Shown here in pieces: positions 15,554-31,279 of a stretch of DNA of 36,264 nucleotides; within the stretch, counting starts at the first letter, position 1, and every line of letters starts with the position of its first letter. The translations under genes were made by a program, and so were the position numbers. The notes under the pieces were generated by a model that saw only the letters and a list, made by a program, of their open reading frames with translations, was not told where the DNA came from and searched no databases. The DNA comes from Octopus bimaculoides (lineage: Eukaryota), in the NCBI RefSeq assembly GCF_001194135.2, contig NC_068994.1:46120514-46156777 (forward strand). Direction: 5' to 3'.

Positions 15554-15671
15554 TTATCTGTCAGTTCTTTCATTTGTAATAGGTGAGCTGCAGCTAAAAC
15601 AGGGATTATCTGCTTAACATTGGTTAATTCCACTTCGTCTTGGTAGAGGCTTGCTAACGCCACGGCCAACC
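15554..15671 (-). CDS. BTBD16: BTBD16-like coding exon 5 (118 nt), BTB core: (G)LAVALASLYQDEVELTNVKQIIPVLAAAHLLQMKELTD(K/N)
   Basis: Acceptor cctgtatttacctacag|GG. Donor TAA|gtaatg (phase 2). AL-x-SLY-x-DEV ... VLAAAHLLQ is the typical BTB helix motif of the germ cell-less/BTBD16 family. This exon is absent from the ORF track because it is short. Confidence 0.9.
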
Positions 15672-15754
15672 CTGTAGGTAAATACAGGCACGATGCGTTC
15701 AGATAAATATAAATATGTGTGTATATGTGTACGTATGTGTGTGTTTATATGCGT

Positions 15755-15870
15755 TAATAATAATAATAATAATAATAATAATAATAATAATAATAATAAT
15801 AATAATAATAATAATAATAATAATAATGATAATAATAATAATAATAATAATAATAATAATAATAATGATA
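15755..15870. repeat. (TAA)n microsatellite in intron 4
   Basis: Directly visible. Confidence 0.97.
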
Positions 15871-15871
15871 A

Positions 15872-16339
15872 TATAAAAGATGGGCTACAGCAAATATTCT
15901 GCTCAATACCACAGATTTGCTTGTCAGTTGTTTGACCTTAACCAGTTGAGCATGTCCCTTGGTGGCTGACGATATGTGCATCTCTGATCATGAGTAGAAG
16001 TAGTGGGGGAGCATCATAGCCATGTGTTGAGCGGAATTCTTTGGGGTTTGAATAATTCACCTTTGGAAACATGGGTGTTTTGCTCAATATCCTTAAACAA
16101 ACCTTATTCATGGACCTTTTGAGCGGGATGGGCTACTCGACCGGAAGAAAATTCTAGCTGGTCCCCACCTGCAAGGTCATGCGTTGTTTATTTTGATATG
16201 AGATCACCATGTCACGCACATATGGTTGTGATACATGTGCCTGGTGTACCCTTATCAAACGGGTAGTCATGATGGGTATAATGGGCTTCGTATATTTTAC
16301 CCCAGTGTCACTTTGATGGCATGCACTGCTCTCTCACTC
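15872..16339. mobile_element. Unclassified interspersed element of about 470 bp flanked on both sides by (TAA)n
   Basis: High-complexity, more GC-rich block with sharp borders at TAA tracts. It resembles an octopus repeat I recall. No ORF or TIR seen. Confidence 0.6.
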
Positions 16340-16344
16340 AATAA

Positions 16345-16578
16345 TCATAATAACAATAATAATCCTTTCTGCTATAGATGCAACGGTCTGAAATTGTTAG
16401 GGAGGTGACTAATTGATTACATCATCCCTAATGTTTCACTGTTACTTAATTTATCAATTCCGAAAGGATGAAAGGCAAAGTCAACCTCGGCGGAATTGGA
16501 ACTCAGTACGTAGCGACGGGCGAAATTCTGCTAAGCATTTCGTCCAGCGTGCTAACGACTCTGCCAGCTCGCCCCCTT
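16345..16578 (-). mobile_element. tRNA-derived SINE (family A), near full length
   Basis: cctttct...gaaaggatgaaaggcaaagtcaacctcggcggaattggaactcag...ctgccagctcgccccctt. Confidence 0.88.
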
Positions 16579-16579
16579 A

Positions 16580-16712
16580 ATAATAATTATTATTCTTTTC
16601 TACTCTAAGCACAAGGCCCGAAATTTTGGAGGAGGGGATCAGTCTATTATATCGACCCCAGTATGCAACTGGTACTTAATTTATCAAACCCTAAAGGATG
16701 AAAGGCAAAGTC
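16580..16712 (-). mobile_element. Headless family A SINE abutting the previous copy
   Basis: ctactctaagcacaaggcccgaaatttt...atcgaccccagt...ggatgaaaggcaaagtc, then truncated at a poly-T run. Confidence 0.82.
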
Positions 16713-17030
16713 TGTTTTTTTTTTTTTATAAACCTAAATCTGTCCTCAAATATCTTACGCACTCTGTATATGTATACGTATATATATATATATATATATA
16801 TATATAGCATGCGGTGAAGAAACTGTCGTCTAAATTATGCAGAAATTAAAATAACACTGATATCATTTTAACACAGATATGTTTACCAGATGTTAGGAGT
16901 GATGTGGTCGCAAAAAGTTGTCTGACACCCATTTTGTTATTTCGGTCACATATACGCCATGGAAACGAGACAACCGATTTCTGAGACTTTGGGATCGAGA
17001 AAAATTTTCAAGTAAATAAGCACAACTCAC

Positions 17031-17348
17031 CTTTCTTTGTCAACTTGGGATCTTCCGCTTCCAAATCCATGTGAAACATCTCAGCTGGAATATAATCTCT
17101 CAAATCTAAGGCCGAATCTGCAGAATTCCGTCTTATACCACTCACCGTTAACCGGTTGTCGAGAATTTTTGAGCTTCTCGACTTCAGGTGAATGTCACTG
17201 GCAGATTTTGGTTTCCTCAACAAACCTTGCTTGGAGCTGTCGTTTGACTTTCCGCGAGGTCTTACAAATAAATCCAGGAGAACTGACGATTTGTCTATGT
17301 TACTGCTATGGAGATTCCATCTGACTCCGAGACAATGTAAACTAATAT
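17031..17348 (-). CDS. BTBD16: BTBD16-like coding exon 4 (318 nt, symmetric phase 1/1), N-terminal half of the BTB domain plus an insertion: (D)ISLHCLGVRWNLHSSNIDKSS...MDLEAEDPKLTKK(G)
   Basis: Polypyrimidine tract ttccttttcctgctctccttattctcag|AT. Donor AAG|gtgagt. Uninterrupted frame. PDISLHCLGVRWNLH and DPKLT match the BTBD16/GCL-type BTB pattern (D-x-x-L-x-x-LG-x-x-W-x-LH ... DP-x-x-T). Confidence 0.88.
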
Positions 17349-29444: not shown

Positions 29445-29553
29445 TTCTTATAGCTTGGTGAATACAATGAAGCAGTAGTCGGTCTATCCTGAATTTGTCG
29501 GAACTTGTAGGGTTGATTGAGGTCAAGATTTACAGCGATCTGGGGACTTTCAG
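29445..29553 (-). CDS. BTBD16: BTBD16-like coding exon 2 (109 nt): (A)ESPQIAVNLDLNQPYKFRQIQDRPTTASLYSPSYK(K)
   Basis: Acceptor catttgtcacatttccag|CT. Donor GAA|gtaagt. Open frame, starting in phase 1 and ending in phase 2, which matches both neighbouring exons. Confidence 0.8.
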
Positions 29554-29603
29554 CTGGAAATGTGACAAATGCCATGATTAAGCTTAAAAGTAAATATTTA
29601 AGG

Positions 29604-29884
29604 GTGAAATTAACGTGCAAGTGGCTGAGCATTCGACAGACACGTGTACTCTTAACGTAGTTCACAGAGAGATTCAGCGTGACACAAAATAGGACAAGGC
29701 TGACTTTTTAAAATATAGGTACTACTTTTAAAATATAGGTACTACTCATTTTTGCCAGTTGGCTGGAGCAACGTGAAATAAAATGTCTTACTGAAGCACA
29801 CACCGCGCCGCTGGAAATTCAACTCACGACCTTATGATTGTGAGCCGAATATTCTAATCACGCAGCTACGCGACCACGCGCCTT
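29604..29884 (-). mobile_element. tRNA-derived SINE (family C variant) just upstream of exon 2
   Basis: tRNA-like head at about 29800-29884 and a 3' block shared with 26405-26500. It contains a local tandem duplication of tttaaaatataggtactac. Confidence 0.75.
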
Positions 29885-30124
29885 CACACATAGAAACGTA
29901 TATGACCACATAAAATACCCATTACCTTTTGTCCGTGTTACCATACATATAGATACATTCATACATGCAAGAGTATCTATCTCTATACACAAACCCAAAG
30001 ATATAGAGGGCCCGCCCAAACCAAGTATACACACATGAAAGAGAAACGTGCAGAAATATTTAATACTAAATTTATTCAGATATCGAAACTTTTCCGCCCT
30101 TTTTTTCTTTTTCTTTTTTTTTTT

Positions 30125-30712
30125 TTGCACGTAGACAAACCAAGTAATTCAACAGGGGTCAATGTTTGGTGTGGAATGTCATCAAAAGGTTTAATAAAGC
30201 CAATTTTCCTTGAAGGTACTGTCACTGGTCAAGTGTACCTAGACATACTACGCACTTCCATTTTACCTGCCATGTATGCATTTTATTGAAATGAGGAATT
30301 TTTCTTTCAACAAAACGACCCTCCACCATGCTACTGCCGAGACGTGTGAACTTACCTGGTTGAGAATTTGCAAGGACACAGGATAGGACGAGAGGTTGCA
30401 GTTGAGTTCCCTACACATTATCCTGATGTAACCCCGGCAGACATTTACATATGCGGAACCCTAAATGAATAGTGAATCGCTGAAAACAATCCACACTGAT
30501 GGCTCTTCGGTAAGAAATCTTAACGGCACGTGCAGCAATCCCACTAAAAAGTGTCTGAGAGATAATGGCCATTACTTTGAGCACCTCTTGTAATTGTAGA
30601 GGTTAAAGGTAATCTATATTAATCCCGTGATGATTGAATGAATTCAATACCGAAATATTTCGACACGTTTTTCTTTTCTTGAAGTGTGTATAGATTTTCT
30701 TGGCGGACACTA
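30125..30712 (+). mobile_element. Tc1/mariner-superfamily transposase relic (DDD-type catalytic region) with probable right end
   Basis: VNVWCGMSSKGLIKPIFLEGTVTGQVYLDILR...FFFQQNDPPP...VEFPTHYPDVTPAD is an eroded version of VW..GLIGP.F / FQQDGAPPH / WP.RSPDLTPLD. Terminus ggcggacactatata. Confidence 0.8.
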
Positions 30713-30764
30713 TATATACACACACGCAGATACACAAACATATATATATATATACGCATTAGTA

Positions 30765-30870
30765 ATTAAGGCACAAGACCAGCTGCATTGAGGGGAGTGA
30801 TTATTCCATACCATCGACCCCAACATACAACTGGTGCTTTATTTTATCTGCCACGGAGGGGTCACGGAAG
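30765..30870 (-). mobile_element. Family A SINE remnant
   Basis: ggcacaagaccagc...catcgaccccaa..caactggtgctttattttatc. Confidence 0.55.
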
Positions 30871-31064
30871 AAACGTTGCAATCCTCCAGTCACATACATA
30901 CGTTAATAATACACTCTCATACGCACAGACGTATGCATGCGTGCATGCATACACAGACGCACGCGCGCATACACACGCACGCTCGCACACACGCACACAC
31001 GTACGCACGCACGCTCACATGCACACACAAGCTTGCATATATACATGTGTATGTGTGGTTCTAC

Positions 31065-31215
31065 CTGTAATGATTTTGATCAAGGTTTCGTTGAGTGGCG
31101 TGGAAATAGCTCGAAGGGCCTGAGAAGTGCCAAGCAAATCACTTCCCAATGGTTCTGGCAGTCGCCATCGGTTCGTTAATCCCACCTGTTTTCTCATTCG
31201 CAGTTTGTTATTCAT
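31065..31215 (-). CDS. BTBD16: BTBD16-like BTB/POZ gene, first coding exon (exon 31065-31221, ATG at 31215): MNNKLRMRKQVGLTNRWRLPEPLGSDLLGTSQALRAISTPLNETLIKIIT
   Basis: Acceptor ttttttttttcttgcag|AAC. Good Kozak context AACACCATGA. Donor ACAG|gtagaa (phase 1). The motif G-x-TNRWRLP...xDLL...SQ resembles the vertebrate BTBD16 N-terminus as I recall it (GSTNRWRLP...GDLLSLSQ), not BLAST-verified. Confidence 0.85.
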
Positions 31216-31279
31216 GGTGTTCTGCAAGAAAAAAAAACATATATCACATTTAATATAAGTGCAGACATATATGTGTGTG

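Follow-up and report, generated by a model that had tools for sequence, protein, structure and literature searches.

Five exons of Octopus bimaculoides assigned to the 5′ part of a BTBD16 orthologue

Introduction

The closest described counterparts of the octopus protein treated here are BTBD16 and its paralogue GMCL1, also known as germ cell-less. Human BTBD16 (Q32M84, NP_653188.2, 506 amino acids) carries an N-terminal TNRWRLP motif, a BTB domain with an insert after its first helices, a BACK-like region and a BTBD16_C domain. GMCL1 (mouse chain 9ijj_4C; Drosophila GCL) likewise joins a BTB-BACK architecture to a C-terminal beta-sandwich, but has a compact BTB domain with a W-x-E motif that binds CUL3, and lacks the TNRW motif at its N-terminus. 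In human GMCL1, CUL3 binding is lost in the WKE-to-AAA and E142K mutants (PMC12815461). A structural context for both proteins comes from mouse sperm. GMCL1 and BTBD16 are equal candidates for a dimeric density in the C1-C2 bridge, which carries the label 'GMCL1 (BTBD16)', and a BTBD16 homodimer or a heterodimer is among the options that the authors allow for it (PMC12297659). In addition, mouse sperm proteomics places BTBD16 among the proteins of the central apparatus (PMC13066092). In this study, we analyzed a stretch of 36,264 nucleotides (nt) of Octopus bimaculoides (assembly GCF_001194135.2, contig NC_068994.1, positions 46,120,514 to 46,156,777), hereafter called the window, of which the minus strand very probably encodes the 5′ part of a BTBD16 orthologue.

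The full octopus protein has all of the listed elements in common with human BTBD16 and is collinear with it over octopus residues 3-544 (28% identity, 224 bits). The two differ in spacing: the linker between the N-terminal motif and the BTB domain is about 30 residues longer in octopus and the BTB insert about 28 residues longer (a spacing of 100 versus 72). Compared to GMCL1, the octopus protein shows the reverse combination, with the N-terminal motif present, no W-x-E motif and an extended BTB domain. The BTB-BACK fold of its predicted structure is further shared with the CUL3 adaptors KLHL11, KBTBD2, gigaxonin and SPOP, yet the identity to these proteins is as low as about 10-12%, Kelch or MATH domains are absent and the phi-x-E site is not conserved.

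Results

Five segments of the minus strand, all flanked by AG on the 5′ side and GT on the 3′ side, join into 788 nt. Counted from the ATG at 31215 they contribute 151, 109, 86, 318 and 118 nt, i.e., 782 nt with phases 1, 2, 1 and 1, and the spliced frame (MNNKLRMRKQVGLTNRWRLP...LLQMKELTD) is free of stop codons. Exon 1 (31065-31221), the first coding exon within the window, extends from an AG acceptor to a GT donor in phase 1; it was placed by tblastn and its borders are the same in O. sinensis and O. vulgaris. Positions 31066-31197 of this exon encode a conserved N-terminal motif and two predicted helices (codons 7-50). Exon 2 (29445-29553, codons 51-87) specifies a weakly conserved linker that is predicted to be disordered, and exon 3 (27421-27506, codons 88-115) continues this linker and adds a helix leading into the BTB domain. 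The largest segment, exon 4 (17031-17348, codons 116-221), encodes the first part of the BTB domain (17348-17251), which is interrupted by a Ser/Lys-rich disordered insert (17250-17107) before the BTB core continues (17106-17031). Exon 5 (15554-15671, codons 222-261, the last codon being split) adds helices of the BTB core up to a phase-2 GT donor. Intron 2 (27507-29444) contains one assembly gap and intron 3 (17349-27420) three, while positions 1-15553 are assigned to a part of intron 5, based on tblastn with the annotated 696-amino-acid protein described below and on the span of the gene. The chain comes with the caveat that it is open at both ends: exon 5 leads into its donor, and exon 1 is entered through an acceptor with an open frame upstream of the ATG, where the preceding 6 nt (AACACC, 'NT') are in frame.

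When used as a protein query, the 260-residue peptide of the window returned a 261-amino-acid protein of O. bimaculoides at 100% identity and 100% coverage, and a protein of O. vulgaris at 82%. The matched cluster contains UniProt A0A0L8HI38 ("BTBDG BTB/POZ domain-containing protein", 261 amino acids) and RefSeq XP_052828557.1, which is annotated as "BTB/POZ domain-containing protein 16 [Octopus bimaculoides]" and is 696 amino acids long. In tblastn, residues 1-261 of XP_052828557.1 map precisely onto the five segments with an identical peptide, whereas residues 262-696 find no placement anywhere in the window; with the 696-amino-acid protein as query, positions 1-15553 gave chance matches only. 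The gene extends over about 196 kb of the chromosome-level assembly, and the window thus holds its 5′ part only. The remaining 435 codons are located outside the window, more than 15 kb further on, and in O. vulgaris no exon following exon 5 was found within 10 kb downstream. The great length of intron 5 also explains why an older annotation divided the gene into two models, a head of 261 amino acids (A0A0L8HI38) and a tail of 251 amino acids (A0A0L8HI26). The end of the 261-amino-acid model corresponds to a read-through of the exon-5 donor (GAT AAg taa, giving K and then TAA). Within the window, the five-exon peptide does not differ from XP_052828557.1 and A0A0L8HI38, and the exon borders are shared.

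Taken at the sequence level, the five exons are very probably the 5′ part of the O. bimaculoides BTBD16 orthologue, coding for residues 1-261 of the current model. A preliminary description of the window had proposed them as a hidden gene of five exons. Its exon borders, phases and uninterrupted 782-nt frame hold upon re-reading and agree with the perfect match to A0A0L8HI38 and the tblastn placement. The word hidden applies only to the list of open reading frames (ORFs), from which the gene is absent, as it already carries a BTBD16 annotation in UniProt and RefSeq; a five-exon gene, in turn, is too small a description, since the whole gene, about 196 kb long, has 696 codons, of which these exons supply the first 261. 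Gene, name and exon structure are already present in RefSeq and UniProt, and nothing in the identity is new.

The C-terminal end of the RefSeq model, which is encoded outside the window, deserves a separate remark. Residues 548-696 (149 residues) lack an equivalent in the 29 other family members compared (occupancy 0.12) and are predicted to be disordered, with a predicted local distance difference test (pLDDT) score of about 30, and the older model stops soon after the BTBD16_C domain. This tail may be a mis-joined 3′ exon.

The assignment to the BTBD16 class is based on domain models, database relatives and diagnostic residues. The window peptide passes the Pfam model PF23998 (BTB_BTBDG, BTBDG BTB/POZ domain) with 59.8 bits (cut-off 27.9, E 4e-16), and stays under the threshold of the generic Pfam BTB model. 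The PF23998 match falls in two stretches and reaches profile position 114 of 122, the domain being completed in the next exon. Outside the window, residues 442-545 of the full protein match PF21059 (BTBD16_C) with 85.7 bits. A HMMER scan of the full protein against 1.84 billion representatives gave 267 hits, 38 of which were below 1e-30. Named BTBD16 proteins among the strong hits originate from Babylonia, Physella, Lymnaea, Holothuria, catsharks, trout, Danionella, the frog Ascaphus and primates, including human Q32M84. Their E-values range from 1e-106 to 1e-55 (Babylonia to Danionella), compared to only about 1e-21 for GMCL1, and relatives of the same class without a database name occur in the sea anemone Actinostola and the jellyfish Sanderia. 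The window peptide alone behaves in the same way, scoring 118, 82 and 57 bits against BTBD16 of Babylonia, frog and trout, and at most 31 bits against GMCL1-class proteins. Against human BTBD16 it reaches 67.8 bits (E 3e-17), with TNRWRLP at human residues 17-23, versus 20.9 bits against mouse GMCL1. With the latter, which is the only relative in the PDB, the full octopus protein scores 58.4 bits (E 4e-15).

The best-conserved part of the window peptide is the N-terminal motif (codons 7-50), with a mean identity across phyla of 0.38, and no Pfam family covers it; Pfam matches the BTB part only. Its signature, R.R.Q.G.TNRW[RQ]LP..LGSDLLG..QA (octopus residues 7-33), was present in 41 BTBD16-class sequences, including the human one, and in none of the GMCL1-class sequences fetched. 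The converse holds for the CUL3-binding motif. Of the 53 GMCL1-class hits, 46 have a W-x-E/D located 21 residues after the W.LH strand, compared to none of the 29 hits of the BTBD16 class. The spacing to the A-L-x-x-L-Y core is 46 amino acids in all seven GMCL1-class sequences measured, and varies from 72 to 133 amino acids in the BTBD16 class; in octopus it amounts to 100, without W-x-E. In the AlphaFold model of the octopus protein, the corresponding site is a disordered loop (residues 149-193, pLDDT below 50). Three independent discriminators settle the class, and at the level of sequence the family is supported as BTBD16 and not GMCL1. The preliminary description had preferred BTBD16 over GMCL1 with TNRWRL as its clue, and both the preference and the clue are borne out by the comparisons above. 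Invertebrate orthologues, to which it attached some value, are not scarce: BTBD16 is named in gastropods and a sea cucumber, and relatives of the class exist in a sea anemone and a jellyfish.

A minor point concerns the donor of exon 1. Some short database fragments end in '...I[IM]TG' followed by unrelated residues. These ends resemble a read-through of the phase-1 donor of octopus exon 1, which gives 'IITGRT', and would suggest that the position of this intron is old.

All ten splice sites (AG and GT of the five exons) are kept in O. sinensis and O. vulgaris. The length of exon 4 differs by 15 and 27 nt in these sister species, both multiples of three. Compared to either species, the ratio of non-synonymous to synonymous substitution rates (dN/dS) is 0.45 overall, 0.12-0.13 for exons 1-2 and 0.44-0.50 for the linker and the insert. 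As judged from these sequence comparisons, the five exons are under purifying selection.

We modeled the full protein with AlphaFold (AF2) from 30 aligned family members. The mean pLDDT is 66, with a confident core (residues 100-148 and 197-552, pLDDT 85-96) that comprises the BTB domain, a helical BACK-like region and a beta-sandwich. Disorder is predicted for residues 1-20, 51-93, 149-193 and 553-696. The best Foldseek match in the PDB is 9ijj_4C from the in situ mouse sperm central apparatus (E 1.3e-14, template modeling (TM) score of 0.61 on the target), followed by the BTB-BACK CUL3 adaptors KLHL11, KBTBD2, SPOP and gigaxonin.

The N-terminus of the annotated protein is uncertain. The O. 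sinensis RefSeq model has an upstream coding exon, LSLHAPLTALGLSHKSDYSYK, located 17.9 kb upstream (L001:2646-2708, with L001 denoting the O. sinensis locus) and spliced onto the same acceptor; this exon in turn starts at an acceptor, in phase 1. A transcript-derived protein whose closest counterparts here are the octopus proteins possesses 58 extra N-terminal residues with an AP.xAL segment, which is also found in gastropod, echinoderm, cnidarian, shark and frog proteins, and many non-mammalian members, probably including the octopus one, extend a further 55-70 residues upstream of the N-terminal motif. The RefSeq and UniProt models of O. bimaculoides lack the AP.xAL exon. Within positions 31222-36264, neither tblastn with N-termini from O. 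sinensis, a second cephalopod and 12 further species nor blastn with the exon of O. sinensis gave more than chance matches; by collinearity, the upstream coding exon would be expected outside the window, roughly 2-4 kb beyond its right end. Because relatives have a conserved coding exon upstream, and exon 1 opens at an acceptor with an open frame, the MNNK start is probably an internal methionine and not the true N-terminus, the octopus model then lacking its true 5′ coding exon or exons. Human BTBD16 also starts shortly before the motif, and both N-terminal forms are thus possible.

The intronic assembly gaps are located at 28058-28738 in intron 2 and at 26650-27202, 22616-23577 and 18713-19013 in intron 3. 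The shortest distance from a gap to an exon edge is 219 nt. Two gap-free loci were available for comparison, L001 of O. sinensis and L002 of O. vulgaris. The flanks of every gap are collinear with both, with order and orientation kept, and there are no indels at exon junctions among the three Octopus proteins; the gaps thus conceal no coding exon and have no bearing on the frame. Their lengths in this assembly, however, should not be trusted, as the run of 301 N at 18713-19013 takes the place of about 7.8 kb of sequence in O. sinensis and of about 3.1 kb in O. vulgaris. Introns 1-3 are shorter here (1.5, 1.9 and 10 kb) than in O. sinensis (5.9, 6.4 and 24 kb) or O. vulgaris (5.7, 4.2 and 17 kb), either because repeats have collapsed in this assembly or because the relatives have acquired real insertions. 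Microsatellites that are TA/CA-rich with an 8-nt period (e.g., 2300-2430, 5380-5458, 22480-22615 and 27900-28057; translating as YIYIYI... or CVCVCV...) border most gaps, including three of the four within the introns of the gene, and are probably the reason why a short-read assembly broke there.

The window as a whole has a G+C content of 36% and ten N runs. No other gene was recognized, as ten non-repetitive ORFs had no Pfam match better than E 0.026, and the window contains no tRNA and no Rfam family at gathering score. The sole entry of the ORF list at exon 4 is a 95-codon ORF antisense to it (17037-17324, plus strand), which is almost certainly a by-product of the opposite coding strand. 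Apparent long repeat families consist of N runs and the 8-nt-period microsatellites, and the only conspicuous dispersed element is about 190 nt long. Its copies at 16400-16593, 35952-36145, 13310-13504 and 13084-13253 are 74-84% identical, it also occurs at L001:4466-4677 in O. sinensis and L002:42038-42211 in O. vulgaris, and it is probably a repeat resembling a short interspersed nuclear element (SINE). A block of 489 nt in intron 4 (15872-16359) is 92% identical to L001:3891-4377, which is located far upstream of the gene in O. sinensis; being out of collinear order, it is presumably a mobile element. Three further intronic or upstream blocks (21257-21835, 23580-25463 and 31912-32558) are 93-94% identical to the sister species, compared to typically 79-90% for the remaining non-coding blocks, and may represent conserved non-coding elements or just slow-evolving stretches.

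Discussion

Two readings would deny that the five exons belong to a BTBD16 orthologue, and we consider either of them very improbable. The gene could be the octopus germ cell-less orthologue, or an ancestor-type gene in which BTBD16 and GMCL1 are undivided, as GMCL1 is the sole relative with a solved structure, provides the top fold match and has detectable homology to the full protein. Yet the window peptide scores more than three times as many bits against human BTBD16 as against mouse GMCL1, both PF23998 and PF21059 are BTBD16-specific and match, and the N-terminal motif is present while the W-x-E motif of GMCL1 and its fixed spacing are absent. In addition, both classes exist in cnidarians (GMCL1 in Montipora; the BTBD16 class in Actinostola and Sanderia), which makes the split older than the molluscs. 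The exon chain could also be a chance open frame or a decaying pseudogene, a view that finds some nominal backing in a dN/dS of 1.7 for residues 197-260 and in the intermediate values of the linker. The former value derives from 1.5 synonymous and 9.5 non-synonymous changes, and we set it aside as meaningless because it is based on about 11 changes. Against decay, the ratio for exons 1-2 is as low as 0.12, the ten splice sites are kept in three species, indels are multiples of three and the RefSeq model retains intact downstream domains.

With the BTBD16 identity retained, the remaining choice concerns function only. Along the protein, a family-specific N-terminal motif, a disordered linker and a nearly whole BTB domain with its insert are followed by the BACK-like domain and the BTBD16_C beta-sandwich. 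Such a protein could serve as a substrate receptor of a CUL3-RING ubiquitin ligase, as its paralogue GMCL1 binds CUL3 and degrades 53BP1 (PMC12815461) and the predicted BTB-BACK fold matches KLHL11, KBTBD2, SPOP and gigaxonin at a Foldseek probability of 1.00. However, the W-x-E motif that GMCL1 requires for CUL3 binding is found in none of the 29 BTBD16-class sequences examined, which carry a variable disordered insert instead, and sperm axonemal proteomics include BTBD16 (PMC13066092). We regard the ligase role as rather unlikely. By analogy with the mouse central apparatus and on the basis of the predicted structure, the octopus protein would most likely be a structural part of the axonemal central pair, a role as CUL3 adaptor being less likely. 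Since the BTBD16 class lacks W-x-E, BTBD16 would most likely act as a dimeric structural scaffold of the central pair instead of a canonical CUL3 substrate adaptor, and its conserved N-terminal peptide may be a docking element.

Several points weigh against this proposal. The assignment in the mouse central apparatus is provisional and favors GMCL1. The missing W-x-E motif does not prove missing CUL3 binding, and the fold is still similar to KLHL11, KBTBD2 and SPOP. The overall confidence of the model is moderate, as its mean pLDDT indicates, and the N-terminal motif itself is modeled at scores from below 50 to 66. Finally, the start codon is uncertain. A more far-reaching combination would join the parts into one scenario: the true start would be located one or two exons upstream and carry the AP[YL]xAL segment known from cnidarians to frog, the TNRWRLP...DLLG peptide of exon 1 would dock BTBD16 on the microtubules of the central pair or on a partner, and BTBD16 would be a ligase-independent paralogue of GMCL1 that has lost the CUL3 site. 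As a whole, this scenario is possible but tentative, and we are inclined to doubt that all of its parts hold together.

In summary, the locus carries little weight as a discovery, since the gene is already named and its orthologues are annotated across animals. A possible by-product for annotators is the 5′ exon probably omitted from the octopus model. The N-terminal motif, which is without Pfam cover, may be of use for annotators and for those working on the sperm central apparatus. The comparison further provides a sequence rule that separates BTBD16 from GMCL1, namely the lack of W-x-E in combination with a variable disordered insert in the BTB domain. This rule argues that BTBD16 would not be a standard CUL3 adaptor, and it bears on the choice between GMCL1 and BTBD16 in the mouse sperm structure.

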